DNA from: Saccostrea cucullata
Lineage: Eukaryota
Assembly: GCF_032062105.1 (NCBI RefSeq)
Contig: NW_026931531.1
Coordinates: 372,001-436,000 of the forward strand
Reading direction: 5' to 3'
DNA length: 64,000 nucleotides
The position numbers were made by a program, and so were the translations under genes. Positions 16,001 through 61,301 of the stretch are shown piece by piece. Positions within the stretch are counted from its first letter, which is position 1, and each line of letters begins with the position of its first letter. The notes under the pieces are model-generated. The model saw only the letters and a list, made by a program, of their open reading frames with translations, had not been told where the DNA came from and did not search any database.

Positions 16001-19000
16001 CATCATTTCATTGATTGATTTTTTGGGAGGAGCATTACGCTCTGCAAATAAGTCTTTTGGAGTCTTATTTGCTTTTGTAGATCCAATGGTACACAGGTCA
16101 GCGAATGCATCCTTTGGTTGAGAGGCACTTGTTACTGGAGTGGCAAATGGATCTTCCACTTTGGTTGGCGCTAGAACAGGCTCATCAAACAAGGAGAAGT
16201 TCTGCTGTTGAGATACTTGTGGCTGTTGTTGACCTCCCCATGGAGTGCCCATTGGTTGTTGCCTTTGTGGAACTGGTGGTGGAGCAAGGCCCCCACCAAA
16301 TCCTCCCTACAAGAAAGAAAAAAATACAATTCATACAATACCTGCAATTACATGGAAGACATTGGTTCATGTAATCATAAGACAAGTAAGTACCCCTTGC
16401 TGAGCAGCAAATGGGTTTGCCTGACTGGTTGGTGGAAATGGTGTAGCTGGCTGTCCAAAGGCTCCAAAACCTTGCTGTTGCTGAGGACCACCAAATCCTG
16501 GTTGAGGGCCACCAAAAGGTTGTTGAGAACCACCAAAGCCTTGCTGTTGTTGAGGGCCACCAAACCCTGGTTGAGGACCACCAAATCCTGGCTGAGGACC
16601 ACCAAAACTCTGACCCCCTGGACCAAACAGACTCATGATATCATCTTTCTTCTTAGCAGGGGCAGGTTCACTGCTGAAGAGATTGAGTTCATCCAGGTCA
16701 GAACTGGCAGACTTGCTCTGATTGGTTTGTTCTGCCGGAGTTGATGAGGCTCCCCAGGGGTCAGAAGATGTGGCGGCAGAAGCAGGGGGTGAGGGAATAT
16801 CATCAAATAATGACTCCATCTTGTCGATCTGTTTTATTCCCTGTAAGAATTTTCAAGGTTCATTTGTCAGTAAGAACAAAAGTAGAGGACAGTGAAGTAC
16901 TGATATGAAAGATTAAATTACTAAAATATTCCTCATGCAATAAAAGTAGAAATTAAAAGTAACAACATTTCTTTTTTTGCCCTTTGTTCAAGTTTAATTT
17001 ATTTTATTTTAGTTTAGCTAAATAACACAAAATAATGATATACAATTCCTGCACACTCAGTAATATGTTATTATATAATCATTATGTACATGTACAAGGG
17101 TTGTCCTTAAAAAACAAAGAGCAAATGTTTATAATTTTTTAACCTTGCAACAAATACTAACCAAATTTTGCACAGACATAATACATTCAATGTTCTTTAA
17201 AATTATGAATTTTTAAATATATATCTTTCATATTAATAACATTAGGACGATTTAGGCCGATAAGGCCTTCGGCGCACAAACAAAATTAAGAATAATTTAC
17301 ACATATAACTATTACATTTGCTTTATTTCTTTCGTACTGTGTAATACATTGAACTCAAATTTAAATCACTGAAATTACACAAAGCAAATACAAAATTTCA
17401 TATAAAGTGCTTTAGAATTCAATGAAACATGATTTTCATTGTGTAGGATATTTTGATGAAAATGATGTATAAACATTTATACCGGCGCACATATTACTAA
17501 ATTGTGTTGGATATGGTCTATATACCAAATTGACTACAAATTTCATTTGCAAACAGAAGTGACATTACACACCAATGTGTAATAAAGATAATGCTTAAAT
17601 GGCACAATATTCAAGGAAAGTTTTTCCTTTATACCGAAAATAGTTACTCATTGCAGTATTCAGTTTACAAGCGCAACAATTAGTAACAAGTTATCTCTCT
17701 TTGCAAACAATGTGTATTCTTATATAAATGTAAGGCGATCTACCCCACCACCTAAATTTCAACTGAAATTTGAATTTGGAAAAAACAAGCATCAAAAAAC
17801 AAACGGACACTAGTGAATTTACCATAAGTCCAAATTTGAACAAGAGTGGTCTATCCATAAAAAAATATATTGAAAAAATGTTAAATTTGTAACGCGAGTG
17901 AAGACAAAGAGATCATGATGATTATAAAAGACGTAACCCGCAAATCCTTGCGGGGCCGGTGTACACTTACATTCTTTTTTATTTTTACCTTTTTTCAAGT
18001 TTAATCATGAAACATGAAATGCTTATAAAATTTACTTTTTAAATAACACAAAATAAATTTAATTCCTGCAGAGAGAAATATGTTATTATATAGTCATTAC
18101 GTACATGTCTATTTTTCCTACTTCTACTTTTTATTACCTGTTCAATGCTGACTAACTCTGTCTGTAGAGCTGACAAATCTGTGGGTTCTTTTTCTACGGG
18201 AGCATTGTTTGGTGGAACCTGACAAATATCAATAAGTCAGTATTAAAAGTATAATATATTATTATACATATAATATCGAAATATTTTTCATTTTTGTTTT
18301 TGGTATCTATCTGAATCAACTGATAATTTTCTTTTGGTAGTTATAAATTAATTTACCCAGTACAGTAAAACAGCCTTGTAGCAATCAAGCTTATAATGAA
18401 ATGACACTTAAAACAAGGTGAGGTTCATTCCCATGACTTTTGAATACATTGTGAAATTAGCAGATACATGTGTTTAACAAAGCAATTGTTTGTCACAGGT
18501 ACTATGTACATGTAAGCCTTTTTTATTACTGTATATATATTTGATTCATTTAAAGTTCATTTTATCATAATTTCCATCAGTATCATTATACAAGTGCAAT
18601 GAAATATTGTGTTTTATAAGTACAGAGGTAGACTTTCAGTCAGAATGTTAGTTTTTAATGAAGTGTCATTTTAGTCTGACAGTTGATGTTATCTGAATCA
18701 TTATGTTAATGGGAGATATTACACACATTATAAATTCATGTGATTATGAATATGGGTAGTTGTTAACAACATCTTGGCATCAACTTTATATAAGTTTTGA
18801 AGAATTTTCAAAATAATATACGTAAAAATTTAAAACAAACTGGTGAACTACTGGTAGATAACAAATACAACGTCAAGAAATGAATTTTTGGTAAATTTTG
18901 CCTTCATGGATCTGTAGAGGTATAAAGAAGAGCTTTTACTTGTTTAACTAAACTAATCTTAACTTGTTAAAATAAACTAAGGATAATATACCTGCAAATA

Positions 19001-22000
19001 AAATTTTGAAGCACAGAGCTTATGTACATGGTAAGCACACTTCCTAGTCCTAATAACTAGCCAGAAGTAAAGTTTGCTACTGTAAGCATTGGCTCCCTAA
19101 GTTATGACCTCCTTCACACTTTTAAAAGGCACTTATATTCATAAGCATCCAATGTTTATCAATTACAATATACTAAGTTATGACCTGAACAAAACTCCAA
19201 GAACAGAAGGATGGAGAGACAGATGGGCAGAGTGATTCCTACCCCTCCCCCCTTTCCAACTCAGTTTGCAGGGGCATAATATAATTTAAACATGCAACTA
19301 AAGAGCTCTCAATATTGATATGTTTTTGGTTTAAAACAAGAAGAATCTTTGGAGACAAGATAGACTATTTTTTTTCATTCAAAGCCTTGATTTCATTTAA
19401 GGATAATTTTTTGTGTTAATTATTAATATCAGAGAAAGAGAAAGATAACTAAGACCAATCACACTCAGATTCAGAAAACTAAGTATCAAGAAATTAATAA
19501 AGCATCTATAGCTACTGGAACAAAACTTACTTCATATATAGGCTCATCTACCTCATGCTCACCGGAGTTGTCCTAGTGATTTTATGTGAACAAGTTTACA
19601 AGGAAGCCACGAAAATCTAATACTAAGAATACTAAGGTCATGTACTATGTACCGGTACATGTACTGGATCAACAAACTACATCATTAATCGATCACAATT
19701 GTCTAAAATTTATAACAGCACTCTAGGTCTATATGTCTAACATTAAATGTACATTATCAATTGATTTCATAAAGGCTTCAGAGCTGTGAGAGTTTTACCT
19801 TTGAGTCTGGTTCATCATCTGTGGATGACTCTGTGGTTAATTCACCACCAAGTTGTACAACTGAATCAAAAAGATTATAGAGATTATATCAATGGTTTAA
19901 TATTTTTTATATTAAAAGAAGGAAGAAAAATAGTAAACATATAGGTATCTACCCAAAAAAGTGACCTTTAAAATGAAGGTAAAATTTTAAATCAATCAAT
20001 CCTTCAACTTCCTCTTTATACAAAATTTACAATAATAGATGAGACAATGAATTCTTCAAAATACCAATAAACATTTATTTTACACATAATCATTTATTCT
20101 TCTAACCAAACTGCACAATATGATTGATTGATAATGTTAAATATTCATGAAACAAAAAATTTGAATTTTACAGAATTCTTTCAAGCTAACAAAGATTTCT
20201 TCTGTAACTTCAATCTCTGACGTTGGTGAATCAAATCACTGTTCCAGAACATGCATTGATGAAATTGTCATTGTACGACAAATACTAAATTCATCTCTTG
20301 AATTTTTTTGAGCTGGCATACTAGTTTGGTTTCAATAAATAATAACAAGCTCAAGGGAAGAACCACCTCCATTAGCTTTAAGATGGCCATTCATCAAAAA
20401 TTCATACAACACCCTATGCAGTCTAAACATATTTGGTGGTTTAAATCCCTAGATGCATCACTGATGCAAGTTTGGCCCAAACATAAATAAATATTATACT
20501 GGTCGCTCTTCTGGAACGTACAGGTCAGACACAGCATAGTCTGTATCTTAAATTGTATCACAAAATTAAGTCTACCCTAAGGCCTACATGTACCTTCTCA
20601 GGAACAGACTAGCTCCTAGCACATTAACATCAAAATTTGGTCAATCACCTGGAAAATGTTGGTCGAATGCAGAAACTCCTACCAGTCTGGTAGTATCCAT
20701 CCCTACATGTGATATCCATGCAAGTTTAGTTATGACAGACCTAATACAATGAACTTAAAGGGAAATGAGAATATTGGACCTGACCAAAAAAACTTTTAAC
20801 CCAGACAGACAGTGATAAAGCTCCTCCCTATGGTGACCGATTGTTAACCAGGGAATGACTATTGTGTTTGGACTGCTTACCATTGTTTGGCATTTCTTAC
20901 CAGGGAATGACTATTGTTTTTGGACTGCTTACCATTGCTTGGCCTTTCTTCTTTCGGTTTGTCATCTGTCTGTTGTTTGGCAGCCTCCATCTCTTTCTTC
21001 TTGTTTTCATACACCACTTGGAAGAGGTCTCTCAGGGTCAACACCACATTTTCTGCCTACAATATTTTTTGAAATTTCATAAAATTCATTTACCGGGGTA
21101 TTTATAGAAAATTGGAGTGACGTCTTCTTCAAACTGTGTTAGAAGTACTCCAAGCAAGCAAGAACTTACAGACAGTGCTTGATATCATGGAAAAGAACAA
21201 AATTGCAACACTTACCGCTTTTTCTGTTTTGATTCCAAAGAATTTATGAGTTCTATCCTCTGTCCCAAATATATAACCAAATGCTCGTCTGTCACTCACA
21301 TCCCGAGAAATGAAAGAGATCTTATGAACAGGATGATGGTGCAATAATGTCTGAAATACAAGGTCTTTGGATGAAGTAATGCAGAGAATTTAAAATGCAC
21401 CATTACTCATAGAAATTTAGGGAGGTAAATAATTTTTGTGGAACACAATTTTTTGCTGTTTTTGAGGGTAGAGAGAGCATGATGATAGTACTCACAGCTG
21501 TTCTTAGGTCAATGAGTTTGATCCCCTCCTCTGAAATGTTAATTATAATTCTCTGCTTGTGTTGACCAGCAGCCTTGACCGCCATTTTCTGAGCCAGAAT
21601 GGTTTCCTGACACATCCTGTCCCCCCTGGCGTCGGCGACATCGCTCACTCCAATCAGCTTGGCATTGAACACCACGCCCTCACCTTTAAATCGGAACGGG
21701 TCATTCCTAGGATCTGCATTAAGAAAATGTAAAATTAATATCTGTGTCAAATACATACAGGAATAACTTTCATACTTCAATTTCACAATCCTCATTGCCG
21801 TATTTATTTACATTCCAGATTTTCATAGTACATAATTGTAGACAACACATTTCCTTTGAACCAAAACAACTTATTGTTTCCTGTCCCACTGGATTTATTT
21901 CAAACACCAGCCTAACAAAATCCTTCTCTTCTATTTCCCTTTTTATGAGTTCAGCTAATATTCATACTCAGGTAACAATTAGAAGCTATCAAGTACAACA

Positions 22001-41148: not shown

Positions 41149-42637
41149 CTACAAAAGCTGAGTTGTGACTGGTCTCCAACCAGATTTTACCTTATTTAGT
41201 TTTACCATTTGTAATGGCGTCAGTTTGAATTCCTGTAACTCTTTTACAGATAGTTCATTAATGAAGGCGCCATCCAGTTTCTCCGCTTGACAAACGTCTG
41301 CCATTTCCCAGAGTCCACATTTTCGAAGACAAGCAACTAATTCGGTTACACCAAGATCACTGAAGTTTGTTTTAGATGAAATTTGTTGGACTTCTGTTTT
41401 AATTTCTTCGAAACTTGGTGCCACTTTCCCTACTGGTCTTAACATCACAGTTCCAACAGGTTTTCCCTTTTCTGAGCTCAAAGAAATATCTCTGAAATTA
41501 CCCATGTCTACATAGTCTGGGGGATTGTTCATGTTAGTGGGTTGTTGTTCTTGTGGTTTCCATGGCCGTGGAGATGGCTTGTTTGCAATCTCGAGTTTTC
41601 GCTGCAAGTTCGTGGAGAGAAAGTCGCGGGCTTTGTTTACATGATTTATGTTGTTCATAGCAGTGACATGAGCTGGTGATTTTTTCAGAAAGGATGGCTT
41701 ATTTGCTAATGGTGGTTTTGAATTTGGTGGAAAGAACTGCTTTTCTGGTTGCTTTGGTGATGGCGTAGGGTACAGATATTCCTCCGATTCGCTCTCTTCA
41801 TCCGGATTCTCAAATAACTTGGCTTTCATCGACACGTTTTTACGTGGATTTGCGTACTTCCTGCTGTTTGTACAGAGATCGCTCAAAGACCTTCCCAGTT
41901 GACTTCCACCACATCGTTCCCCGTTCCGTTTCCTTTTTGCATGGCTTCTTGGTAGTGTGGTGATATCGGGTGGCGGCGGCTGATGTACCTCCTTTTTCAG
42001 CAGGGACAAGTCGGGGTAGTTATATTCGTGTGACAGTTCCGCCGCGCGGATTTCTTGTTCTGATGGAAGTCTTTTGGTTTTGGACCTTTTTGGGCTCCCA
42101 GCGGGGAGGTCGTGTGGGGGACGGGAATCTATATCTGAAGTCACAGGACTTAGTTTCATCAAAATGAGGACTCGTCTCACTGCATGACGAAACACTTGTA
42201 ACTGTCAAGAGGAGGGAAAAATGCATGTAAAAGCTTATTTAAACTTGTATAAAATGATTAACATAAATCAAGTTGTTATTTATATGATTACTAGTATTTG
42301 TATCATTGTTCTTAATTTTCCGAATTGATTGTGACGGTGGACACCCCATTTTATTCGATGGACACAGAGCACCGTCACGTAAGGTATTAACATTTTAAAA
42401 GTTTGTTATTTGTCGTGAACTTTATTTTATTGTGAACAGCATACAGTGAAAAAACCCTTTAGAATTTAAAAAATATATATAAATAGATAAACAAATTAAT
42501 ACATATAATAGAATTTATTTTAAAAAAAGATTTATGTTCACAATGTATACTAATTATGTGAGCTTTCTGAAAAAAATGCTGATTTGTACCTTTGAAGTCA
42601 AGGCATCACTCAGGCGATTTCTGACCGAGTCTCCCAT
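41149..42637 (-). CDS. Pro/Tyr-motif-rich adaptor with C-terminal GAREM-type SAM domain (main exon 41149-42201; N-terminal exon 42590-42637 and/or 42923-43000, uncertain)
   Basis: 348-aa ORF ending FSDLGVTELVACLRKCGLWEMADVCQAEKLDGAFINELSVKELQEFKLTPLQMVKLNKVKSGWRP, a SAM pattern with the GWRP ending seen in GAREM. Acceptor at 42201 and two in-frame phase-0 upstream donors. Confidence 0.75.
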
Positions 42638-43229
42638 ACTCCTTACCGGGACTTTGGTTGATCACAGGATTAATCTGCTCAGTGGCTCTTAAAAGAAATT
42701 ACACATACATCTATATGCATGTAAATTATTTTTTCTTTTGACAAATTAAAATTTTTAAGACCTTATAAACAGAACTGCATGATAGTTCAAATTATTTTTT
42801 TTAATAAATCGAATTAAAAAAAAGAAATTTTCAAAAATATGATTATTGTACAAAATAGCGGACGTTTCTTTAATTTTTTCCCCGTTAATTTTCTGGTTTA
42901 TTTATAGTAATTTTTAACTTACCACCTGTTCCTCCCCCTGTTCTAGTGTGGATAATCCGCCAAAGTTCAAATGGACTTCATTTTCTCCATTATTCATCAT
43001 TGTGATGAAATTGCATAAACCTGCACAGGACTTTGCTTTAAGGAGGATATTAATCCATGAACAATAAATAAAACGGAAATCGGCGCGCGGATGTTATTGT
43101 ACATTTGGACAAATGCAACACCATCTTGTGCTATATTTATATTTAAGACGACCTCAATAATCACCTTAATTAGACACATAAATAAAGGAATTTAGTAACA
43201 CTGAATTAGAAGAGACAAGAACAGCCGCC

Positions 43230-45524
43230 ATGAAGTATCTACAGATTTTCGTTGTCCTGTTAATTGTGGGATTGGGTGCCGCACGGAGAGGTAAGATAAC
43301 CCAGACAGAAATATAAAACTTACTCTCCGCTAGTCTTTCTGATGTATAAGGGTGTTTTAATGATTTTACTGGTTGTATCTTTGTTAGTTTTTCTTATTTT
43401 CTAGTTTTCAGTTTTTATATCCTTTTGATATATTTGTTTGGATTTTGAAAGTCTAAATGTTTTGAAAGTCATTCCTTGTAATACTAAATCTTTCAAATTT
43501 ATATAAATATAACAACCATATGTTAAAATTGGAAAGTTACACAAAACTGAATATTTTTGATAACGCATGTATTATATAGAACAAGCTGTATAGTATTCAA
43601 AGTCAACATTTTGACTTAAGTCTGTTCACAGTTTATGGTCTGCAGGCCTGGCTTAACACCGCTATGAAGACTTAACATGTAAGGCAGATTTTTTTTCTAT
43701 TATAGGCAGAAGGTTTCGAATATTCTGTTCTACAGAAGCAGATTGTCCCCACTTTTCCACATGTGTTAACATGGGTCTTGCGGACAAAAGCGTTTGTTTG
43801 CCAAGTATGATTGCACTCTTTTTATATGAGATAAATTAAAGTTTTATTTTACAAGCAGAATTGGTAATTATTTTGAATAAATACTGCTAGTATTTAATGC
43901 CAATATCTTTCACAATCCTTTAAAGCATTTATGAATTTATCGCTTTGTAGAAAAAATGGTGAATATAAGGATGGAAATGAAATTATCCAGGCTTCCATCT
44001 TTGGCAAGTTGTACTGAGGATAGCGACTGTGAAAATGTCGGGAAATGTGAAGAGGTGCCTAACTTTGGAGTGCGCATGTGTATGCCAGGTGCGTTGTCAG
44101 TTTAAGTTTATATGCTGTTTATACCTTAAAAAATTAATTAATTATTATAAATATAGAATAAAAAACATGGAATAAAAATGGAAAATTATAGAATACAAAT
44201 AAAAATTATACAATAAAAATGAAGAATTATTCAATATTAATGGAAAAAAATCGAATATTGCAACGGGTTAACATAGCATACCGTTCACTTTGATATATTT
44301 AAAGAGAAACAAGCATCGCCAATTCTTGTATTATGTATTGTATGATGTAGAATACAAATTCTCGTAACATGACTTTATGTGTTGTAGGTTTCGTCAGTAA
44401 GATGCTTAACAAAAAAAGTGATCAACTGGCAAAGACCTGCACCTCCGAGAACGACTGTGGCGCTTCCTCTAAATGTATAGAGTTTCCAAAATTCGAAAAA
44501 CAGATCTGTTTATTTGGTAAGTTTCCTTTCCCAGCTATAATTAAAACAAATTGAAAATGAATGAATTGATATGAATTTAAAATTAAATCAAGACGTATTT
44601 GTGAAAAGCCCCCTTTGGCAGCATGTTTTGTAGCTTGTGGCGAAGGTTAAGATTTCTGAAATGGTAGTCAAACTCCAAGGTCAAGAGATAAAAAATGCTG
44701 TTACCTATAAAAAGGATTTGTCTATCTGAACATATAAAAATACATCGAAGATGAAAACATTTATGTGGTCTTCATTTCAGAAAATAAACTTTTACACAAA
44801 ATGATGGTAAGCATCCATAGTAAGTTTGTAAAGGTGGACCAAGAACAACCAGATATCGATACAGAGGAAGACAAAGAGGACGGGAAAGATGACACCAAAG
44901 GACAAGAGGGAGAGAATGATCTGGATGATAATGACGATGATAACGATGATGGTAAGGATGATGATTTGGAGGATGCTTCATTTATCAATGATTCTCAGTT
45001 TCTTACCAAGATAGATGACAACGATGAGATATACAAAAAATTCATCAGTGCGCACAAGGCGTACCGCGGGAAGGGATCCTGGAACATGTTTTTCATGGGT
45101 GCCTTTTCAATGGCGGGAGTCGTGATCCTCATTTTATTTTCTCTATTATGGTTAGTTATTTCAAAATTACATAATTTCCTGCTATATACATATTAATGCT
45201 GTCTCTATAGAATCTGTGTCCGTTGAAATGAACATTATATATGATTTTTTTAAAAATATATAAATTTATGAATATTCATTATCGGAATTGATATTGAAAA
45301 TTTGGAATGTGAATTGCATTCAGTTTTCCAAGGTCAGTGATAATAAATTTGATGATTTTTTTTTATCCAGTTGCTTGACCGTCAAAAAGAGAATGTCAAA
45401 GAAGCACAGAGAGGAATCCGGCGAAACAGGAAAAAAGGGACTTCGCAACGTGTTCCTGACAAAAATCAGCGCTATTCCAAATCCCTACAGTAAACTCGAA
45501 GAAGAGAAGGGCGTTAAGATATGA
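43230..45524 (+). CDS. Uncharacterised type I membrane protein: signal peptide, three 4-Cys modules, Asp-rich stalk, TM helix, YSKL tail. Exons 43230-43290, 43706-43804, 43951-44088, 44388-44516, 44781-45150, 45371-45524
   Basis: MKYLQIFVVLLIVGLGAARR|G..CSTEADCPHFSTCVNMGLADKSVCLP|..CTEDSDCENVGKCEEVPNFGVRMCMP|..CTSENDCGASSKCIEFPKFEKQICLF|..DDNDDDNDDGKDDD..FFMGAFSMAGVVILILFSLL|CCLTVKKR..NPYSKLEEEKGVKI*. All boundaries are GT-AG and in phase. Confidence 0.85.
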
Positions 45525-45869
45525 TCATGTTTAGAGAGGCCATTGGATGACGAGATGAATGTTACCAAATAAATAAACTATTGCCTAGATCGGCAATTGT
45601 TGAATGTGGCGATGAACACCTGACTTGCAGTACTTTAAAAATAACGACTTTTTTTTTTCAAATACAACTGTAAAATATCATTCAATCATGGAAAGATATA
45701 AATTGCTGTGTCAATGAGGTTTTCATTTTATTTTATTTTTTAAACCACCTCATGAAATAAATTTTCAAAAAACGGAATTATTTTTACCTTTAAAAGTACT
45801 ACTTTTTATTTGAAATCATTGACAACTGTGTTTTTAATAAAATGGAAAACACAAATTTACTTACGTTTG

Positions 45870-46480
45870 TCATTTGCAAAATTACTTTCTTATAGCGAAT
45901 CTGATATACAAGTACTCTGAAGTTGATATTAAAAATGTTCGAGTTTCTGATTGACGATATCTTTGTGGTTTTTGGAAACTATATCCTCCGACAATGGGAT
46001 ATTCACAAGGGTACCAATTATTAGACTGGACCTATTTTTATTCATATGAAGAAGAATTTATCTCATACACTGTACGTGAAAAGAAGAAAACACTTTCTTC
46101 AATCTGACATTTAGATATAATTATATACTACTAAATGTCTATTTTTATAAATGTTTACATAAATGATTATCGACGGCGTGTTGTTAATCAATTTGCATAT
46201 ACTTGCGATAAGATATCCTGGTGAGCTTGAAATAACAGACAATCTAACAAACACTAAAAAAATAACTATTAAAGTCACGAAGAAAACTAGTAAATTTACT
46301 GTCCATACAATCACTACCTTAAAAGTCCATAACACAGAACAAAACAGAACAAAATAGGAGCAAAGCAAACACGGACCAAACATCAGAGGTGGGATCAGGT
46401 GCTGTGGGGGAGTGTGATACATATATGATGATAAATGGGATATGACGTTATCTTTCTGAACTTTCCTTACTTTTGCAGCA
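45870..46480. mobile_element. Highly degraded Penelope-like fragments
   Basis: TACTCTGAAGTTGATATTAAAAATG..GAGTTTCTGATTGAC is the reverse complement of 37180-37227. The region also carries the GGTGGGATCAGGTGC tail motif. Confidence 0.55.
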
Positions 46481-46659
46481 GTATATACCTTAATATTTAC
46501 ATTTCCAATGTCTTTGTCCGAGAAAAAATCACAAATTGTAAATGTACTTTATATCAAAAATGTATTAGTCGATTCCAAAAAAACCACGTGCAGGGCGGGA
46601 CAAACAACTAGACAGAAGCATGGCTTGGAGCACGTGGATTGGCGGAATCAAAGCATGTA

Positions 46660-47150
46660 TAAGGAATAACTGTCAGATTTTTCAATTTCATGACGATGAT
46701 CAATCGATTAGCTTGCGTGATAATTTAAACAATAAAATGGATTCTTTGCTTGTTATTACTGGAATTAACGGTAGCAGCTGTTGCAGAAAAAATACATAAC
46801 CCGCGTAATAACAAACAAAGAAAGACATTTTATTGTTCTTATTTATATCTTTTTAAATAATCATTTAAAAAGGATTAAAAAGTTTAATTATTGTATTAAT
46901 AATGCGAACGTCTTTATACGTTTCATTGATGGAGCAGCCACTGATCAAGAAATCTGTACAGGCAACATGCCTAATCACAGTAGTTCATGCAGTGATTAAC
47001 GCAATGGGTTTTCTTAAGAAATAAAGGAGAAAATATTCAGTGGATGTAAATATTTTATGCATAAACGCCTTCGGCGTTAATGCAAATCATCACAACAGCC
47101 AATCGATTGATCACATCATGAAATCGAAAAAAAAAGACAATTACTCCTTA
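46660..47150. mobile_element. MITE with ~65-bp TIRs (TAAGG..CCTTA); an internal fragment recurs at ~49100-49285
   Basis: TAAGGAATAACTGTC..TTTCATGACGATGATCAATCGATT / AATCGATTGATCACATCATGAAA..GACAATTACTCCTTA. Confidence 0.75.
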
Positions 47151-49440: not shown

Positions 49441-49586
49441 CTAATGCTTTCGATAACCACCTCTCCAAATTATAAGCCTCTGATATCTTCTCCAATACCT
49501 CCTCCCCTGAAATCTCCTGTTAAACCTTATCCTTTGGAATCTTCTACCATACCAGTTGCTGTTCTGTTGTTGTGCCTCCTCGACTT
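49441..49586 (-). pseudogene. Orphan last exon (copy C) of the cationic-peptide gene family: (E)VEEAQQQNSNWYGRRFQRIRFNRRFQGRRYWRRYQRLIIWRGGYRKH*
   Basis: Intact acceptor, open frame and the same TAG as copies A and B. Intron homology to 55650-56720 stops at ~50670, and no signal-peptide or Cys exon was found between there and copy A. Confidence 0.65.
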
Positions 49587-51764: not shown

Positions 51765-52290
51765 AGAGAGCTTATAAATGCGAAAGTAAGTTGTCTGTCG
51801 TCCGTCCGTCTGTCTGTCTGTAATCATTTTATTTTTCAAAATGCTACTCCTCCTACGGTTTTAGTCAGATTTTAATATAACTTGGCACACAAGTAGATTA
51901 CACTGAGATACCTAATTCTAAATATTGGTTTTGATTTCGATGCCATGATTACAGAAATTTCTTTGAAATATTTTCAAAATTCTACTCATCTCAAAGTTTT
52001 GGTCTTATATCAATATGACTTGGAACACAAGTAGACTTTACTAAGATACATAATTCTTCGTATTAATGTTGTTGCCATGGTTACTAAAAATATAAATTAT
52101 TTTGAAATATTTTCAAAATGCTATTCTTCCTATAGTTTTGTTCTGATTCAATATATCAAGAAAACAACTAAAGCAATGATCAATTTTTAATGTATTGCTG
52201 TTGCAAATTTTCAATTTGAAATGGTACTTTATTATCTCCTTAGTTATAAGAATATACCAGTAGAGCTACACCTCGTGAAACTCAGTTATA
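51765..52290 (+). mobile_element. HINE-like element, duplicated at 58107-58626 as part of a segmental duplication
   Basis: (GTCC/GTCT)n head, ~125-bp internal repeats (CTTGGCACACAAGTAGA..CACTAAGATAC), and a shared 3' end ATACCAGTAGAGCTACACCTC..GAAACTC.GTT. Confidence 0.65.
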
Positions 52291-52602
52291 ACATACAGAA
52301 TTCGATAAGGCGGGAATAGATTCTCGTTATCTTAATTAAAATAGCAAGAAACACATTATAGGTGTTTAAAATTGAAAAAAATAATTTCTCATGTAAAACA
52401 TGCTACACTTTGTATCTTTCACTCATGTCGATTCATTCGGACCGCCTTTTGCACAGTACCAAGTCTCATGATATTTTTAAAAAGTTTCCAACATATTAAC
52501 TTATCTTATGCATCCAATAAACGTGGAAGGGCGAAATGTAATGATAATTTTGTTGGGCATGTACTCCAGGGTTATTCCTATCCTAAACTCAACCCAGCGA
52601 CC

Positions 52603-54397
52603 CAAGTTCATTTATTCACTCAAACCATTTAAAGTATATGGTACATGAGGACAATGAAAAATATTTACAGCATATATACATTCTGGTCAGAGGTATAAGT
52701 ATATGATATATATAATAAGACAATGAAGTGGAGAAGAAAATGAAGAGAAAAAAAATGGAAAAAGGGAGGGAAAAAAACACGTAATAATGAAATGTGAGGA
52801 AAACAATTATGGAGGGCAGACTAAATCATATATTTTTAATATAAACGTACAGAGTTTTTTAAGTGTCATATCATCTTGTTTTGTCATCAGTTGAGAAAAT
52901 TTAAGAACATTTGGTCTAGTAAAGTAGTATTCATTAATATACTTTTTCCTTATGTTTGACAGTGCAGTACATTCAAGCATAAAATGAAATTCATCAGCAA
53001 TTTGTTTAGCATTACAAAGTGTACATAATCTTTCACTTAATGGTATTGATGCCCATCTTCCCAGCTCAACTGGTAGATGGTGATTAGTAGTACGAAATTT
53101 GGCAAGTATTTTCCTTAATTTTAATGACAGAGTACTTAAATACTTTTCACACTCAAAATTTGTTTTAAAAATTTTATACAAAGTACCTTTGGAAGAACTG
53201 TTAATATCAGAATGCCATTTTTGTATAAATTGATCTTGTAATCTTTGTTTAACAACAGTAGTAACCCAGTCTTGATTAGGATTATGATAAAACTGTTCAT
53301 TCCAGATATAAGAAAGTCCACATGATTCAAAAATACGATTAACACAGTCAATCCAAGGGTTCTTACCAATTTCAGATTGTGAGTTAGCAATTAAAAATTG
53401 ATACAATATACATGAAATTTTCTTATCTGTGCTATTCAATAATTTACACCAGTATGAGACTATTCTTGAATAAATAAGGACAGATAATGGAAAACGTCCT
53501 GTTTCACCATAAACCATATAATTCGGGGTACTACTTTTCAAATATAGAATATGTTTCAAAAATTTTAAATGAACACGTTCAATAATATCTAAGTTTTCAA
53601 AACCCCAGATTTCACAACCATAAAGTAACACTGGTAAAACCATTTTATCGAACAGATCAAGTTGACATTCTACAGGGAGGTTAAATTGTCTTATTTTTCT
53701 GATAACACCATACATAGCTATTTGGGCTTGGTCACAGAGATGTTTCTTGGCTTTTAGAAAGGAGCCAGATCTTGAAAATATGATACCAAGATATTTAAAT
53801 TCTTTGACAGTTTCTAGAATCTTGTTATTATAGTAAAAAACTCTTTTGTTTAAAGGGCCTTTAGAAAAAATTAATAGTTTGGTCTTCTCTATATTTACTT
53901 GTAATTTCCACTCTGAGCAGTAGCTTTCAAATTCATTCAAAGCATTTTGTAGATCATCAGGAGTTTCTGCTAAAATGACAGTATCATCGGCATATAAAAG
54001 TATAAGAAGTTTCAAATACACACATAAATCATTTTCTATAGAAGTCGTAAGGCTTTGTAAACCAATTATATTTCTATCAACAAGATAATTCTCTAGGTCA
54101 TTAATATACAACAGATAAGTTTTCACCTTGTCGTACTCCGACATTACAAAAGAAAAAATCGGTTGTATTGCCGTTCATCTTTATAAGTGATTTAATACCC
54201 TGATACATATTTGTAATATACGTGAAGCATTTGCCTTTAATTCCATAATTTAAAAGTTTACTCCAGAGACCGTTTCTCCAAACAGTGTCAAACGCTTGCT
54301 TGAAATCTATAAAAGCACTAAAAAGTTTTTTCTTACACTTCATCAGTGTGTTTGATAAAAAATGTAAAGTCAGAATATGGTCTAGAGTAGAATGTTC
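52603..54397 (-). mobile_element. 5'-truncated non-LTR retrotransposon (LINE, RTE-X/CR1-group-like) reverse transcriptase, one frameshift near 54110
   Basis: FIDFKQAFDTV, GVRQGENLS, LLYADD, FKYLGI and C-terminal RLCTLC..DEFHFMLEC; the 445-aa ORF is uninterrupted; AATAAA lies near the 3' end. Confidence 0.92.
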
Positions 54398-55497
54398 TCA
54401 ACTAGATTTGGAACTGAATGTTCAAATAAGCTATTCTGTAAATGTAGTAATTGGGCAGACAAGGTACAAATTAAGGACTGAGCTATTAATAAGATTCTGA
54501 ATCTCGCCAAATAGTGCATACATGTATTGTATGTAATTTATGTCGGTTCAGTGAATTTCTACGATTGTGATTAACTTAATGTCTTATTCTAACTTTATCT
54601 ACATCTCGCACACAGATATGATAAAAAAAAAATTAAGATTAGAAAATTGCAAACGTTTGTAGTTGTTAAAAAATATTTTTCAAAAGAAGAAATCATAAGT
54701 AAATTTTTTAAAGTAATTTTAAGCCCAAATTACTAAATTACTAAAATAAAATTACTATGAAGAGTTTATACTGATATATCGCATCATATAAAAATGAAAG
54801 GAATATTTGTAGTTGATAAAATGTCGTCGAAACACCTAAATATTGAATTATTGACCCGGCAAAGCTGGAGGTATGTATGTACCCGCAAGTACATATCCAA
54901 ATTTAAGTTTAAATATTTGATTGATAAATTGTTTCAACATTTTTTTTCACAAAAGAAACATTTCATTTATCTCTAATAATAAAAAAAAAACATCCATCAG
55001 TTCTTGATGTTTTATTGAGGCGTGTGATGTAAACATTTTCTTTCCTGTACAAAAGATATAATGGCATTATTGAATACATGTATACTTTCCAAACAATGAT
55101 TAGAATAAAATTATTCAACGAAAACAATGAAAAGAAAATCATGCATTTCACATAATTGATAATATTATTTCAAGTTAAAAAAAGGATTTTTCAAGTAATT
55201 GAAAATTACTTGATCCACATAACGCATTAATTTTGCCGGATGGCGTCAAGTTATCAAATGGTATTGCGATCATCGTAGTTTTGGTAAATTCAGTGCAGTA
55301 ATATTCAATGCATTGAAACGTTTAAATGTCGTTAAATACTGTAAAACTGATTTTTGATTCTTCATTCGGAAAAAAAGTTATATTTGAATGATGTCTCTGT
55401 AGTTATTTCCGAGGCCCATTTCCTTTCTACAGCGTAGACAGTGCTGCGACCAAATCCCCTCAAGGTCTTTTATAAACCCTTTCCTCTGAAATCTTCT

Positions 55498-57243
55498 CTA
55501 ATACTTTCCATGATATTTCCTCCAAATTATAAGCCTCTGATATCTTCTCCAATACCTCCTCCTCCTATGAAATCTTCTGTTAAACCGTATCCTTTGGAAT
55601 CTTCTTCCATACCAGTTGCTGTTCTGTTGTTGTGCCTCCTCAACTCCTACAGTAAAGTAATCAGTAATAATCAGTTATTTTACATGTAAAATAATGAAAT
55701 TAATAAGAACAAAACTGTTTTAACTTTTTAATCATTATAAAAAAAAATCTTTCCCTTTATTTCACAAATATATAATTTCTTCTTCGAAACGTTCTACTTT
55801 GATTGAAATCTTTCATTTCAGGAAGTAATTGTATGTTGTCAAGAAAAAAAAAATCAAAGTCTATGAATATTTATCATAGAATTTTTTTTGCATTTATGAT
55901 CATGGAAGTACTATAGGTATACTTTAAAAACTTTCTTTACATTTTAAGGGCTTTGGCGGGGACAACGATGCGCTAATTCATAAATACCGCAAAAAAATAT
56001 TGATACAATATACAGCGCATTAGGGTGTAGTGCTAATTCATGAATGCGCCTACAACTCAAAACCAAGTGTTTGCGCTAAATTTGAATTCGCCGATTTATG
56101 AACAAGTTTAGTATCTTTTCTAACCGTCAACTAAAAAAAAAAAATGTTTTAGTACATGTTCGGAATCTTCGCCTAACCTCTGAAAAAAAAAATTCTTCTC
56201 GTGTATTATCACATAACAATAAATATATAGGCAAATTTTGATCAATCGTTACATACTTGTTTCTTTAAATTGTGTGTATTTTGTCTGGCCAAAGTGATTT
56301 TGAAATTATGAAACTAATTGTTCCATAACATCTTTGAAACAGGGTTAAAGTCAAAAGTAATCTGATATCACATTTAATGTGTTGGGAGCGCCATTGTCGA
56401 ACAGTTTCATGGTGATCAAGTTTGAGATGTCCAAAGTTACATTTACATCTGCTCACAATTTTGCGCTTATTCATTATTAATGCATTGAGATAGACATGTC
56501 TATAGAGTTTCACGTGTTTTTTTTTTCATATAATTTGATTCAAATAAAAAATTCAGTTAAAAAATAAAAAATATTAATTACAACGATCAGAGGCCAGAGC
56601 GCAAAAGCTTGCAAGGGAATCGAAAAACCGGTAGCGATTAAATTATGAGAGTTTAAAAGGTACTTTGGTAAAATAATTTGTAAATTGGTAAAATAAATAT
56701 TTTTCGTCACGAAAATATAACAGCTGTTGTACAAGAGTTCATTCAGAAACGTTATATGTCGAAATTAAAATACAAAACATTGTACTTTCTATCAAAAGGC
56801 TTTGATGGATTTATAATTCAAACATGAAGTCACATGATATGAAGTGTCTAACTTGACCACCTACCCGGAATACACATGCTCTCCCCCAGGTCCGGAATCT
56901 CTTCACATATCTCCAGGTCGTCACAGTCACTGTCGAAAGAGCAGCTTTTGAGAGGCGGAGGTTGGGGTACGTCATTTTCTGCCGAATCTGAATGGTTTGT
57001 GACATATAAGTGTCGCTATTAGGTAAAACATTTGAATGCTATGTTTGAATACTTGTTACTGATAACACTAGCAAGTCCTTAGAGCATCTCTTTGTTCAGT
57101 GTAATCAAACATTATAAAGACACAGATGTAGTTATGTTAACAGATATATAACAAAAGTCTTGTATGAGACTTATTATCTTACCTTTTCCTGCCAGACCCA
57201 ACCCAACAATCACAAGGATAAGGAAAATCTGTAGATACTTCAT
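55498..57243 (-). CDS. Secreted prepropeptide, copy A (110 aa): signal peptide, anionic 4-Cys domain, Arg/aromatic cationic tail. Exons 57183-57243, 56865-56987, 55498-55646
   Basis: MKYLQIFLILVIVGLGLAGK|DSAENDVPQPPPLKSCSFDSDCDDLEICEEIPDLGESMCIP|GVEEAQQQNSNWYGRRFQRIRFNRRFHRRRRYWRRYQRLIIWRKYHGKY*. Phase-1 GT-AG introns; differences from copy B are mostly synonymous. Confidence 0.85.
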
Positions 57244-58813
57244 GGTGGTTACTTTTGTCTCATCTGATGAAAAATTACTGAATTCCTTTTTATATATTTA
57301 GGGACATGGTATTTGAGGTCATACCGACGTAAATATAGCACACAAGTTGTTTATATTATTGTCTATTGTACAACAACATCCGCTCACCAATTCGGATTTA
57401 ATTTATTGTGCATGGAGTAAAATCCTTCTAAACCAATGCCATATGCTCGTTTCTGTAATTTCCTTAACTTTGATAGATTCTAAGGAAAATAAGTTTAACT
57501 GTACTAAAGCGGATTCTGCATTGCAGAACCACGAAAGGTAAAAATGAGATCCTGAAAGTAATATAAGGTTCGTGAGTTCAAGACGTATAAGTAAATAATA
57601 CGTAGAAACTTGCAGCTTCTTATGAAATATCATGAAAAACATTTTTTTAAATATATTTTTTTTTTCTTTCCTTTTTCATTTTAGCATTTAATTTATTTTT
57701 ATAAAAAGATCCATTTATCTTCATTTTTTAAAAAAAAATATACCGGTATGATGCAAAAAGGCTCTGTTATTTAACAGATTCTAGGAGGACAGCAGCAATT
57801 GGCCCCCGAAACCACAGATCATATAGAAACTGGTTTCTAAAACCTACATGAGAGTTTTTCAATACGACAGTCAATTTAATTTTTATATCAACATTCGATT
57901 GATTGTGTTTAGAATCAAAATCTGTGATGACTTTAACTTTCAATCGTACGTTTGACTCAATGACCTTGTCAGCAAATACACATGAACAATCTGAGAATTT
58001 TCATACTAATTGTTTGGTCATTATGTACATACTGAGTTGTCGACGGGTTTTTCCAAAATTAGCAAATTTTCCGAAATTATCAAAATTATTTAAATTATCA
58101 AAAATACTAGTCCGAGACCAGAAGAGCTTATGCAAAAGTAATGGGTCCGTCGTCCGTCCGTCTTTTTGTCTGTACACATTTTTTTTTCAAAATGCTAATC
58201 CGCTTACGGTTTAGGTCTGATTTTAATATTACTTGGCACACAAGTAGACTACACTAAGATACTAATTACTGGGTTTCGATGAACGGTATTGCCACGTTTA
58301 CTAGAAATTTCTTTGAAATTTTTTCAAAATTCTACTCTTACAGTTTTGATCTTATTTCAATATCTTGCAACACAACTAAACTACACTAAGACACATAATT
58401 CTTTGTATCTGTTGCCATGGTTACTAAAAATATAAATTTCTTTGAAATATTTTCAAAATGCTATTCCTCCTACTGCTTTGGTCTGATTTCAATATATCTT
58501 GCCAAGAAAATGACTAAACCAATGATTAATTTATTGCTGTTGCAAAGTTTCAAGTTCAAATGCTACTTCATCTCTCCTTAGTTATAAGAAAATACCAGTA
58601 GAGCTACACCTCTTGAAACTCTGTTATAACATACAAAATTTGATAAGGCGGGAATACATTCTCATTATCTTAATTAAGATAACAAGAAACACATTATAGG
58701 TGTATAAAGTTGAAAAAAAGAACGACTTCATTTCTCATGTAAAACATTTCACATTTTGTATGCTGTTTAACTTTCACCTCGAGTCGATTCAATGCCCCTT
58801 TTTGCACAGTACC

Positions 58814-59395
58814 AAAGAAGAAGGTACAGTTTCAATACAAATAAAGCCCTATATTTTTCTAAAATATGAAAGTGATAGAAGAAATTAAAATTAATTCTTT
58901 TTGAATCATAGGAATCTCTGCAGTAAGAATACACAAATGGTTTTCCTCATATGACCTCCTAAATGCCAATTGTGACGTCATTAACTTGTGCATTTTCCCG
59001 TATTTTCTTAAAAAGTTGCAGAAGACCTCAATTTTCAGGGAATTTTCTTTCAAAAAACATACTCTGCCACCGTCGCCCGGAAAGATTTTGAGATAAGTGA
59101 TTTTTCATAGCAGTTCACATAATATATCCAAAAATTAAAGTGGGCGACGGTGGCAGACACTATTTTCTAAAGGAAAATTAGTAGAAAAACGAGTCATTTT
59201 GAAGCTTTTCTGCATTAAACTTAAAAATGTACCAAAGTAATGACGTCATATTTCAAGAAAGGCTCTTCTTCATGTCATATTCTTTAATGATTTATCATAT
59301 TCATCTACTCAACTATTGTTAAAGCCAATTTCATAACTTTTTAAGAACATTGAATTTTTAGGGCACAATAAAGCTCAAACCGTACCGTCTTCTTT
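58814..59395. mobile_element. MITE with AAAGAAG..CTTCTTT termini and an internal 16-bp inverted repeat, in the spacer between copies A and B
   Basis: AAAGAAGAAGGTACAGTTT / AAACCGTACCGTCTTCTTT; TCTGCCACCGTCGCCC / GGGCGACGGTGGCAGA. The element is absent from the paralogous site at ~52460. Confidence 0.8.
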
Positions 59396-59843
59396 CATGA
59401 TACTTTTAAAAAGTTTCCGACATATTAACTTATTTTATGCATAAAAAAATGATGAAGGGTATTTAATGATATTTTGTTGGGCATGTGCTAGAGGTTTATC
59501 CCTATCCTAAACTCAACCCAACCACCCACCACCCTCAACTAGATTTAAAACTGAATGCTCAAGTAAGCTTTTCTGATAAATATCTCTGCCAGTGTTTTGC
59601 ATTTGTCGTTTAAAGTTTATCTATTTATCAATGTTACGGAAATGAATGGCATTGGTTTGGAAGGATTTTACTCCATGCACAATAATTTAATTCCGAAATT
59701 GTGAGAGGATGTTGTTGTGCATTAGACAATAATATCAACAACTCGTGCTATATTTACAATCTAAATGACCTCAAAAACCTCGTCTCAAAGACATAAAAAG
59801 GGAATTCAGTAATTTTTCATTAGATGTGACAAAAGTAACCACC

Positions 59844-61301
59844 ATGAAGTATCTACAGATTTTCCTTATCCTTGTGATTGTTGGGTTGGGTATGGCAGGA
59901 AAAGGTAAGATAATAAGTCTCATACGACTTTTGTTATATATCTGTTAATATAACTACATCTGTGTCTTTATAATGTTTGAATACACTGAATAAGAGATGA
60001 TTTGCGGACTTGCTAGTATTATCAGTAACAGGTATTAAAACTTACAGCATTCAAATGTTTTAACCTAACAGTGACACTTATATTTCACAAACCATTCAGA
60101 TTCGGCAGAAAATGACGTATCCCAACCTCCGCCTCTCAAAAGCTGCTCTGACGACAGCGACTGTGACGACCTAGAGATATGTGAAGAGATTCCGGACCTG
60201 GGGGAGAGCATGTGTATCCCAGGTAGGTGGTCAAGTTAGACACTTCATATCATGTGACTTCATGTTTGAATTATAAATCCGTCAAAGCCACTTGATAGAA
60301 AGTACAATGTTTTGACATTTTAATTTCGACATAAAACTTTTCTGAATGAAGTCTCATAAAAGATTTTAAAAATTTATTTCTTGAAGAAAATATCAATTTT
60401 TAAAATCAGAGGGAAAAAAGCTCTAAATCTCTAATAATTTAATAGCTACCGGTTTTAAAATCCTCTTGCAAACTTTTGCACGCTGACCTTCTAAAACTAG
60501 TAGTTTAAATGTTAATTGATTTTTTCAATTTTGATTGTATTATTTTAAAAAAACCCACATGAAACTCTATAACACGTGTCTACTCGATCAGTTAAATGAA
60601 TTAGCGCAAAAATGTGAGTAGATATAATTGTAACTTTGGAGAATTCCATATTTGAGCTAAATGTACTTATCACCTTAAAACTGTCCAATATGGGCACTCT
60701 AAACACATTTAAGTGATATTAGATAACTTTACACTTAGTTTCATCTTTTCAAAACCACTTTAGACAGACAATATATACACACAACACGGTCATGCACGCC
60801 AAGAAATATTTTCAAGAGGTTAAGCGATGATTCCGATCATGTACTAAATCAATTTTTTTTAGGTTGACGGCTAGCAATCAAGTGTAAAATAGGTCCCTGA
60901 TCTGTGATTCCCCATCAAAAATGCTCAAATTTTCAAACATACATTTTTCTTTAACAAATCGTCGAATCCTTTGAATTTGAATTTGCTGTCTTTGCAATCT
61001 ATAATCACTTGCTGAAATGAAGGATTACATGTTACAATCAAAGCAGAATATTCGAAAAGAAGTGGAATAACTGTAAAATAGAGGGAGATAATTTTTTATA
61101 ATAATTTTAACAGTTCTATTCTTATTAAGACTGTACATGTAAATATTTACTGTAGGAGTCGAGGAGGCACAACAACAGAACAGCAACTGGTATGGAAGAA
61201 GATTCCAAAGGATAAGGTTTAACAGAAGATTTCAGAGGAGGAGGTATTGGAGAAGATATCAGAGGCTTATAATTTGGAGAAAATATCATGGAAAGTATTA
61301 G
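59844..61301 (+). CDS. Secreted prepropeptide, copy B (109 aa): signal peptide, anionic 4-Cys domain, Arg/aromatic cationic tail. Exons 59844-59904, 60100-60222, 61156-61301
   Basis: MKYLQIFLILVIVGLGMAGK|DSAENDVSQPPPLKSCSDDSDCDDLEICEEIPDLGESMCIP|GVEEAQQQNSNWYGRRFQRIRFNRRFQRRRYWRRYQRLIIWRKYHGKY*. Good Kozak context ACCACCATGA; phase-1 GT-AG introns. Confidence 0.85.

Follow-up and report, generated by a model that had tools for sequence, protein, structure and literature searches.

Genes and annotation

Copies A and B, two small genes in the 64,000-nt stretch of Saccostrea cucullata DNA analyzed here (the window), are real, young protein-coding genes, known so far from this species alone in the databases searched. 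We consider it very probable that both are real and have the following architecture, that of a secreted pre-pro-type protein: a signal peptide is followed by an acidic four-Cys piece and then by a polycationic tail of Arg and aromatic residues, for which the last exon is reserved. Copy B (+ strand, 59844-61301) is an intact three-exon gene whose spliced translation yields a 109-aa product, and copy A (− strand, 57243-55498), likewise intact and with three exons, yields one of 110 aa; the two form an inverted duplicate in head-to-head arrangement. Both introns of copy B are bounded by GT-AG, with both junctions in phase 1, and copy A has the same splice signals, all of which are intact in both copies.

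59844..59904, + strand: copy B exon 1 with the start codon; it encodes the signal peptide in 20 codons plus 1 nt, is followed by a phase 1 GT donor and matches XP_062570865.1 residues 1-20 exactly
60100..60222, + strand: copy B exon 2 (phase 1-1), encoding the acidic module with its four Cys spaced C-x5-C-x5-C-x10-C, 100% match to XP_062570865.1 residues 22-61
61156..61301, + strand: copy B exon 3, coding part, a short acidic/Gln linker and then the 37-aa Arg/aromatic tail, with the stop codon TAG at 61299-61301
61434..61439, + strand: copy B polyadenylation signal AATAAA (motif scan), 133 nt 3′ of the copy B stop
57183..57243, − strand: copy A exon 1, signal peptide; the copy A model is XP_062570889.1
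56865..56987, − strand: copy A exon 2, encoding the acidic four-Cys module (spliced model)
55498..55646, − strand: copy A exon 3, coding part, with a tail one codon longer than in copy B

Both products are letter-identical to RefSeq Gnomon proteins of S. cucullata, copy B to XP_062570865.1 (LOC134232893) and copy A to XP_062570889.1 (LOC134232910), each of which RefSeq labels "uncharacterized protein." The original prediction had proposed two intact three-exon genes for secreted precursors of 109-110 aa; the models do translate, have GT-AG introns and match the RefSeq proteins, and the proposed copy B junctions (59904/60100 and 60222/61156) are borne out by the GT-AG signals and the RefSeq-identical model. 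The genes had further been described as missed by the open-reading-frame track, which is possible, but they are not unannotated, as both were already in RefSeq as uncharacterized proteins. In NCBI annotation practice, homology-free Gnomon models are normally retained only with transcript alignment support, which suggests that the copy A and B introns have RNA-seq support. Our search of transcript contigs found none carrying the two proteins, and a literature search found no mention of the two loci.

Between the proteins of copies A and B there are 3 substitutions and a single in-frame indel of one codon. Identity between the copies is 94-98% in exons, 74-93% in introns and 81% in flanks, and dN/dS is 0.13, a ratio based on small counts (11 substitutions in total). 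The tail exon has 3 synonymous and 0 nonsynonymous changes plus one in-frame 3-nt indel (dS ~0.12). Because exon identity exceeds that of introns and flanks and dN/dS is 0.13, the pattern goes beyond chance; the annotated frame is evidently under purifying selection, in the module as well as in the tail.

Relationship to a neighboring membrane-protein gene

A spliced model built here for a neighboring gene (gene D) predicts a 316-aa type I membrane protein. The predicted protein has its signal peptide in common with A and B, and phase 1-1 exons encode its three four-Cys modules; an Asp/Glu-rich stalk, a transmembrane segment and a short basic cytoplasmic tail complete it.

43230..45523, + strand: gene D, 6 exons (43230-43290, 43706-43804, 43951-44088, 44388-44516, 44781-45150, 45371-45523), the start of exon 5 being the least certain
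59662..59843, + strand: proximal promoter plus 5′ UTR of copy B, whose sequence is conserved in copy A and gene D; a TATA-like ATAAAA lies at 59793-59798 (blastn, three-way alignment, motif scan)

By blastn, the copy B promoter region is 73% identical over 257 nt to positions 43044-43299 (gene D), and DNA identity to gene D is 73% for both shared blocks, the promoter/signal exon and the module exon. At the protein level, the A/B module shares 45-46% of its residues with the second module of gene D. Four Cys are present in each module (A, B and all three of gene D), and the A/B module is much more acidic than any of those in gene D. A genome search found the module nowhere beyond A, B and gene D. 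Judged by alignment, the promoter, the signal-peptide exon and the one four-Cys exon of A and B are a partial copy of gene D. The acidic piece had been put forward as an anionic pro-domain; it is not a dedicated pro-piece but a single instance of a module of which the gene D ectodomain has three. This borrowing opens readings of the two genes other than that of an antimicrobial peptide (AMP) precursor.

Origin and composition of the cationic tail

The tail-coding part of the last exon lies in a tandem array, and a third copy of this exon is present on the − strand.

61197..61331, + strand: 27-bp (9-codon) tandem array of ~5 units that encodes the copy B tail and runs on past the stop codon (TRF and unit table)
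49441..49585, − strand: copy C, an exon-3-only relic that retains a piece of intron 2 and 3′ flanking sequence, with exons 1 and 2 absent

TRF reported a period of 27 with 2.6 copies and 78% matches for the copy B array. Units 1-3 share 16-19 of 27 bases, the mean pair identity being 12.8 versus 8.3 ± 0.7 in shuffles, and the stop codon TAG of copy B aligns with the TGG (Trp) codon that closes units 2 and 3. The last exon, and with it the cationic tail, is thus a translated 27-bp tandem repeat (minisatellite). In copy C, the frame is still open, the C-terminal end is altered, and pN relative to copy B (0.074) is close to pS (0.096); it is by these signs a decayed third copy. Gene D, the constrained copies A and B and the decaying copy C all lie inside 20 kb.

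The residue counts originally claimed for both copies agree with our recount, and the charges are nearly balanced. In copy B, residues 21-72 (~52 aa, module plus acidic/Gln linker) contain 15 acidic residues (8 Asp and 7 Glu), and the 37-aa tail contains 13 Arg and 2 Lys with no Asp or Glu (net charge +15), 11 aromatics (3 Trp, 5 Tyr and 3 Phe) and no Pro. Copy A has 14 acidic residues versus 16 basic residues in the tail. Tail length is 37-38 aa across copies B and A, and the mature protein is ~90 aa. Between module and tail, the sequence holds no dedicated convertase site; apart from the Arg pairs and triplets within the tail, at which cleavage could fragment it, there are no dibasic sites. 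Trp-Tyr stands immediately N-terminal of the first Arg pair, Gly-Arg-Arg directly follows the linker, dibasic sites recur every 9 residues, Gly-Lys lies near the C-terminus, and the tail ends in basic-Tyr residues. We found no amphipathic-helix signal in the tail (at 100 degrees, its moment of 0.16 falls short of the mean of 0.22 for shuffled sequences). AF2 predicted a beta-hairpin for the four-Cys module (pLDDT of 78) and gave low confidence for the tail (pLDDT of 50-62).

Homology searches and closest known systems

With hmmscan against Pfam-A, the exon 2 and exon 3 translations matched 0 families at E-values up to 10. Exon 2 searched against 1.84 billion representative sequences matched only the protein itself, which was also the only match in a word-based search with the whole copy B protein (covering proteins of 60-190 aa), and the tail alone had no match among proteins of 26-84 aa. 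Within these length and word limits, there was no homologue beyond the two proteins, and neither the Pfam nor the word-based searches linked them by sequence or profile to a known AMP, in line with the earlier view that the precursors are not among the known bivalve AMPs. The oyster peptide precursor Cg-Prp is ~61 aa, near the edge of the 60-190 aa covered by the whole-protein search, which detected no Cg-Prp homology.

In the cathelicidins of vertebrates, a 4-Cys pro-piece holds a highly variable, last-exon cationic peptide inactive until it is cleaved. Copies A and B likewise have 4 Cys in the acidic piece and a cationic tail on the last exon (exon 3 comprises the linker and the whole +15 tail), a likeness that is a functional analogy only. 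The cathelin-like domain PF00666 (~100 aa, cystatin fold) has no counterpart in the 40-aa beta-hairpin module, so the proteins are not cathelicidins. They differ further in the length of the pro-piece (~40 versus ~100 aa) and in the number of exons (three versus four), show no sequence or fold relation, and have a module that comes from a local membrane-protein gene.

Cg-Prp of Crassostrea gigas is encoded by a multigene family and consists of a signal peptide, an anionic domain and a C-terminal cationic domain, with a putative chymotrypsin-type site lying between its anionic and its cationic part and with Arg-Pro indels in the cationic domain that give length variants (PMC2823732). Copies A and B have the same domain order, also in an oyster; their one-basic-codon tail indel parallels the Arg-Pro indels, and the Trp-Tyr at the module/tail junction resembles the putative chymotrypsin site. 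In contrast to the Pro-Arg motifs and high Pro content of Cg-Prp and proline-rich AMPs, to which they therefore do not belong, the A/B tail is Pro-free and rich in Arg, Trp, Tyr and Phe, and the anionic part contains a four-Cys module. Moreover, Cg-Prp genes have two exons or none, and their anionic/cationic boundary does not fall at an exon boundary. The original prediction of a convergent cathelicidin-like system is right about the signal/anionic/cationic layout but overstated the novelty of the design, as this layout was already described in oyster Cg-Prp (PMC2823732), so the layout is no first.

Myticalins of Mytilus are linear, strongly cationic peptides of biased composition, made from a tripartite precursor with an anionic part and encoded by lineage-restricted genes with three exons, a phase 1 intron and frequent pseudogenes (PMC12294457). 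Copies A and B share the bivalve origin, the strongly cationic, biased peptide, the anionic part, the three exons, the phase 1 intron and the lineage restriction. However, myticalins are Cys-free, with an untranslated exon 1, a central cationic peptide, a conserved dibasic site and a C-terminal anionic extension (PMC12294457), whereas in A and B the order is reversed (the anionic part precedes the tail), 4 Cys are present, exon 1 is coding, and no sequence similarity was detected. We therefore do not assign them to the myticalins.

The AF2 model of the module can be superposed over 27-29 residues (rmsd of 0.7-1.3 Å) on knottin/ICK toxins, squash inhibitors, the Dickkopf/colipase Cys-rich subdomain, WAP/crustin and EB/Lustrin-type modules. 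All of these structural matches are weak (Foldseek E > 1, Z at most 2.9), and unlike these modules (6-8 Cys), that of A and B has 4 Cys and two possible disulfides, so the likeness of the model to small disulfide-rich folds would be a generic resemblance, not membership. An inhibitor cystine knot in particular needs six Cys and three disulfides. Copies A and B have no match to the Lustrin cysteine-rich domain PF14625, and the gene D modules score 16.1 and 20.3 bits (best match, E of 0.0007), below the gathering threshold of 27 bits.

Putative function

The most likely function of A and B, proposed tentatively and at somewhat less than an even chance, is that of a host-defense (AMP-type) or other polyanion-binding effector; as a putative function, the AMP reading is plausible. 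Extended Arg/Trp-rich peptides bind anionic surfaces by Arg charge and aromatic insertion. The acidic module would neutralize the polycationic tail during synthesis and storage, and the tail, freed or merely exposed outside the cell, would bind anionic surfaces such as microbial envelopes in the manner of these extended peptides, not in that of an amphipathic helix; the most plausible release site would be the Trp-Tyr before the first Arg pair, by a chymotrypsin-type cut. This function is suggested by the near charge balance, the composition of the tail, its place on its own last exon and the purifying selection, and also by the restricted distribution, local duplication and decayed third copy, which are typical of fast-turnover effector families. 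The Cg-Prp parallels in domain order and basic-codon indel (PMC2823732) point the same way. Against it stand the lack of a dedicated convertase site, of an amphipathic-helix signal, of similarity to known AMPs and of a transcript contig in our search, together with the low tail pLDDT and a pro-piece that came from a membrane protein and could have a role of its own.

A fuller scenario, possible but doubtful, is that of a newborn host-defense peptide family in which a partial duplicate of the receptor-like gene D took in the 27-bp minisatellite for a last exon, the Arg/aromatic effector arose once this repeat was translated, and the borrowed module turned strongly acidic to mask it. Oysters have few known linear AMPs, to which a released antimicrobial tail would add a new effector, Cys-free and of Arg/aromatic type. 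Its origin by exon borrowing from a neighboring membrane-protein gene and minisatellite translation would be unusually legible, a dated, stepwise example of a "cathelicidin-like" pro-piece and effector arising de novo in one oyster lineage. The origin of charge-masked AMP precursors would then become a testable question, with the parent, both constrained daughters and the decaying copy all found within 20 kb.

Because gene D has an Asp-rich stalk of a kind also found in biomineralization proteins and A and B keep its proximal promoter, a mantle or shell role is possible. The proteins could then be uncleaved structural or matrix components of shell, cement or mucus, in which module and tail together make the protein "sticky" through charge patterning and cation-pi contacts, so that it attaches to acidic matrix, chitin or mineral or else forms coacervates; this is somewhat unlikely, and would make them ordinary lineage-specific secreted proteins. 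The length of the Asp/Glu-rich stalk, a tail built as a tandem repeat of low complexity, a trait of many shell and adhesive proteins, its basic-Tyr end and the lack of a clean processing site all fit such a role. Yet the mature protein is very small (~90 aa), has only four repeat units and lacks the Gly/Ser/Asp-rich blocks that typify matrix proteins, and the resemblance of gene D modules to the Lustrin domain of a nacre protein (E of 0.0007, 20.3 versus 27 bits), which would favor it, is sub-threshold and absent for A and B. The common promoter, signal exon and module exon, a module found nowhere else in the genome and purifying selection on module as well as tail would also suit a soluble, uncleaved derivative of gene D, whose polycationic tail replaces the transmembrane anchor and tethers one module to the anionic cell surface or glycocalyx as a decoy, competitor or modulator of D binding. 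We know of no precedent for such an arrangement and consider it unlikely, since the A/B module is far more acidic than those of gene D, a better fit to charge masking than to conserved ligand binding.

The Gly-Arg-Arg after the linker, the dibasic sites at 9-residue spacing and the Gly-Lys near the C-terminus recall a convertase-processed small-peptide (neuropeptide- or hormone-like) precursor, in which cuts at Arg pairs would release, at Gly-Arg-Arg, a C-terminally amidated linker peptide. The products would, however, be heterogeneous and only 2-7 residues long, the repeat units are not one peptide copied between spacers, and neuropeptide precursors are usually conserved, whereas the databases searched held no homologue from other molluscs, which leaves this reading scarcely probable. 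It is quite unlikely that A and B are very young genes with no established function, or annotation models whose transcripts are not translated in any meaningful way. Their occurrence in one species in the databases searched, the minisatellite-born last exon and the one copy already decayed would agree with this; the dN/dS of 0.13, a tail exon with 0 nonsynonymous changes at a dS of ~0.12 and the in-frame indel (albeit with 11 substitutions in all) argue against it, as do the splice signals intact in both copies and the better conservation of exons than introns.

Gene models and coding status of copies A and B

We found that copies A and B are one small gene present twice, in inverted, head-to-head orientation, with the following exons:

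59844-59904, 60100-60222, 61156-61301 (+), copy B: GT-AG introns, phase 1 junctions, 109 aa
57243-57183, 56987-56865, 55646-55498 (−), copy A: GT-AG introns, phase 1 junctions, 110 aa

Splice signals, phase, and the 109- and 110-aa translations all fit the two intact three-exon genes of the original prediction: the four introns are all GT-AG, every junction is in phase 1, and neither translation contains a stop. Its residue counts were likewise right, with 15 Asp/Glu in the stretch of copy B that separates signal peptide from tail, and 13 Arg, 2 Lys, 11 aromatic, and no acidic residues in the 37-aa tail itself (net charge, +15). Exons were joined locally for translation, composition, and dN/dS; searches were run exon by exon, and for the whole protein the queries were the database proteins of copies B and A alone (P0001 and P0002, respectively).

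Comparison of the exon 2 translation with 1.84 billion representative proteins returned one match, a 109-aa protein identical (100%) over residues 22-61, whose full sequence is that of the copy B model (XP_062570865.1, "uncharacterized protein LOC134232893," Saccostrea cucullata). The second member of its cluster (XP_062570889.1/LOC134232910, 110 aa) is the copy A model. Both genes are, i.e., already RefSeq Gnomon models, and we found no paper in the literature mentioning either locus. NCBI Gnomon normally retains models without protein homology only when they have transcript support, so the status of A and B would hint at RNA-seq support for their introns. When assembled contigs were queried for exact copies of P0001 and P0002, no record came up, in a set that possibly leaves out records from the species' own genome.

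Identity between copies A and B
Exon 1: 98.4%
Exon 2: 94.3%
Exon 3: 97.9%
Intron 1: 92.7%
Intron 2: 74.4%, many gaps
Both flanks: about 81%

By the Nei-Gojobori method, the two coding sequences differ by 7 synonymous and 4 nonsynonymous changes (dS, 0.12; dN, 0.016; ratio, 0.13). All three substitutions in the tail exon are synonymous, and the sole further change there is a 3-nt in-frame indel. The 11 substitutions in all, i.e., small numbers, point to purifying selection on the annotated frame.

Family members in the genome and descent from a gene D-like ancestor

A search of the whole 1.17-Gb assembly placed exon 3 at three sites, namely, A, B, and a third copy, and the exon 2 search returned one further, more distant relative at window positions 43977-44087 (+). 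The third copy and the neighboring membrane-protein gene, gene D, are as follows:

49441-49585 (−), copy C: exon 3, part of intron 2, acceptor site, open frame, and 3′ flank
43230-45523 (+), gene D: predicted six-exon spliced model, 316 aa

Exons 1 and 2 were looked for at copy C and are absent. In comparison with copy B, copy C has near-equal pN (0.074) and pS (0.096) and a rewritten C-terminal end; we read it as a decaying relic.

The gene D model, built from the sequence at 43000-47000, starts with a signal peptide near-identical to that of A and B and continues with the A/B four-Cys module in triplicate, one phase 1-1 exon for each. Downstream of the modules are an extended stalk rich in Asp/Glu, a hydrophobic transmembrane segment, and a short basic cytoplasmic tail, and the predicted product is thus laid out as a type I membrane protein. 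Positions C15, D20, C21, C27, and C38 are invariant across the five aligned modules (A, B, and the three of D), the modules of A and B being much more acidic than every D module. A profile built from these five modules found no additional copy in the genome.

At the DNA level, copy B matches gene D in two blocks. The first runs from promoter and 5′ UTR (~180 bp) through exon 1 into the first part of intron 1 (73% over 257 nt), and the second covers the module exon (73% across 94 nt); outside these blocks there is no match between B and D, and exon 3 is without a counterpart in D. From this two-block match and the absence of exon 3 from D, it follows that A and B go back to a partial copy of a D-like gene to which a new last exon was added. 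The proximal promoter can be aligned in A, B, and D and contains conserved blocks; in A and B it also has a TATA-like element. Scans of the 300 bp upstream of each of A, B, and D found no NF-kB-type site (GGGRNWYYCC or a looser form).

The predicted cytoplasmic tail of D carries a Tyr-Ser-Lys-Leu (YxxPhi-type) motif. The predicted mature N-terminus of D (Gly-Arg-Arg-Phe-Arg-Ile-Phe) resembles the repeat unit of the A/B tail over a length too short for a homology call.

The cationic tail as a translated repeat

Tandem Repeats Finder reported a 27-nt period at 61197-61265, i.e., within the tail of copy B. Set in codon register, the array consists of four in-frame units, of which units 1-3 have 16-19 of 27 bases in common, while unit 4, which terminates in the stop, lacks one codon. 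This stop (TAG) is aligned with the TGG (Trp) that closes units 2 and 3, and a fifth unit directly 3′ of it would again read Arg-Arg-Phe-Gln-Arg. Mean identity between pairs of units was 12.8/27, compared with 8.3 ± 0.7 in shuffles. The 27-nt period, the unit alignment, and the contrast with the shuffles indicate that the cationic tail is a translated minisatellite.

An amphipathic helix was considered for the tail and rejected, its helical hydrophobic moment at 100 degrees (0.16) being lower than the shuffle mean (0.22). The periodicity peaks of the tail lie at 80 and 120 degrees because of the 9-residue repeat. If membrane-active, the tail would act in the mode of extended Arg/Trp-rich peptides rather than as an amphipathic helix.

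An orphan family of known design

Pfam matched neither A/B exon, and the modules of D gave only sub-threshold matches, led by Lustrin cysteine-rich (20.3 bits; cut-off, 27) and followed by DX, WAP, and Dumpy. A profile search of PDB sequences was blank (best E, 0.11). AlphaFold2, run on the five-module alignment, predicted a C-terminal beta-hairpin (pLDDT, 78). In fold searches with PDB Foldseek, VIA wide, and Atlas, the structures nearest to it were knottin/ICK toxins, squash inhibitors, the Dickkopf Cys-rich subdomain, and crustin/WAP and EB-like models, with superpositions at rmsd 0.7-1.3 Å over 27-29 residues, Z no higher than 2.9, and Foldseek E values greater than 1. The predicted module is a generic small disulfide-stabilized hairpin, which does not imply a family assignment. 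The full-length AlphaFold2 model was poor (pLDDT, 62; pTM, 0.27), with the tail as a low-confidence helix, and was left out of any reading of module-tail contacts.

A word-based search of P0001 against 5.8 billion proteins (length window, 60-190 aa) returned only P0001 itself, the same type of search with the tail alone (26-84 aa) returned no candidate, and the best value for ESM Atlas features was 0.78, below the useful range. The exhaustive HMMER search of representatives covered exon 2 and the word-based search covered the tail; the restriction of the family to Saccostrea cucullata is a restriction among annotated proteins. The placement of A and B outside the known bivalve antimicrobial-peptide (AMP) families was borne out by the Pfam, exon 2, whole-protein, and tail searches, none of which gave a known relative.

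The order of signal, anionic, and cationic parts in A and B is that of Cg-Prp from Crassostrea gigas (PMC2823732). Cg-Prp variants differ by insertion or deletion of a basic motif within the cationic domain, a domain based on Pro-Arg motifs; the domain junction holds a putative chymotrypsin site, and the domain boundary is not an exon boundary (PMC2823732). Set against that junction, A and B have Trp-Tyr immediately before the first Arg pair, and their tail, unlike that of Cg-Prp, lacks Pro. In myticalins the order is reversed, a dibasic site is conserved, and Cys is absent (PMC12294457). Cathelicidins share with A and B the logic alone, i.e., a four-Cys pro-piece and an effector on the last exon. 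Of the proposed convergent cathelicidin-like system, this precursor logic stands, but Pfam found no cathelin domain and the design already exists in oyster Cg-Prp. Given the blank homology searches and the Cg-Prp precedent, A and B thus form a new, orphan sequence family of known design.

Possible functions of A and B

The present analysis adds a legible gene origin, in which a partial duplicate of a membrane-protein gene is joined to a translated 27-bp repeat. Copies A and B have a secretion-type N-terminus in common with the membrane protein D, an acidic Cys module in near charge balance with a constrained polycationic aromatic tail, and, together with copy C, a history of recent local duplication and loss. 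Tentatively, and at somewhat less than even odds, we regard A and B as charge-masked effectors of host defense or polyanion binding. Their reading as AMPs is weakened by the missing processing site, by the many Arg pairs inside the tail, and by a "pro-domain" that is a borrowed module.

The Asp-rich stalk of the predicted gene D and the promoter common to D and A/B add some weight to the reading as an uncleaved shell, cement, or mucus protein, which we consider rather unlikely. It is more doubtful still that A and B are soluble derivatives of D tethered by their polycation, and there is only a slim chance that they are young genes without a settled function. A source of small, convertase-processed peptides seems very improbable.

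Other features of the window

The remaining features are as follows:

52807-54144 (−), 445-aa ORF that contains a YADD motif; lies between relic C and copy A
58150-58520 (+), in the A-B spacer, and 51800-52200 (−), upstream of relic C: tandem units of about 120-130 nt, "...ttttcaaaatgcta...ggtctgatttcaatat..."
15092-21795 (−), Disabled-like adaptor gene with large exons, from the ORF list by eye
41149-42195 (−), 348-aa ORF with a C-terminal end SAM-domain-like by eye, immediately upstream of gene D, opposite strand

The 445-aa ORF resembles the reverse-transcriptase portion of a non-LTR retroelement. Short segments flanking it (52466-52604 and 54397-54443) are 84-88% matches to the spacer upstream of copy B, which suggests insertion of the retroelement into an older duplicated copy of the A-B spacer. 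The 120-130-nt units are an interspersed or satellite-like genome repeat. Among the ORFs of the Disabled-like gene, one has, by eye, a segment of PTB/PID type, and others have long regions rich in Pro/Ser/Gln and regions rich in DPF motifs.
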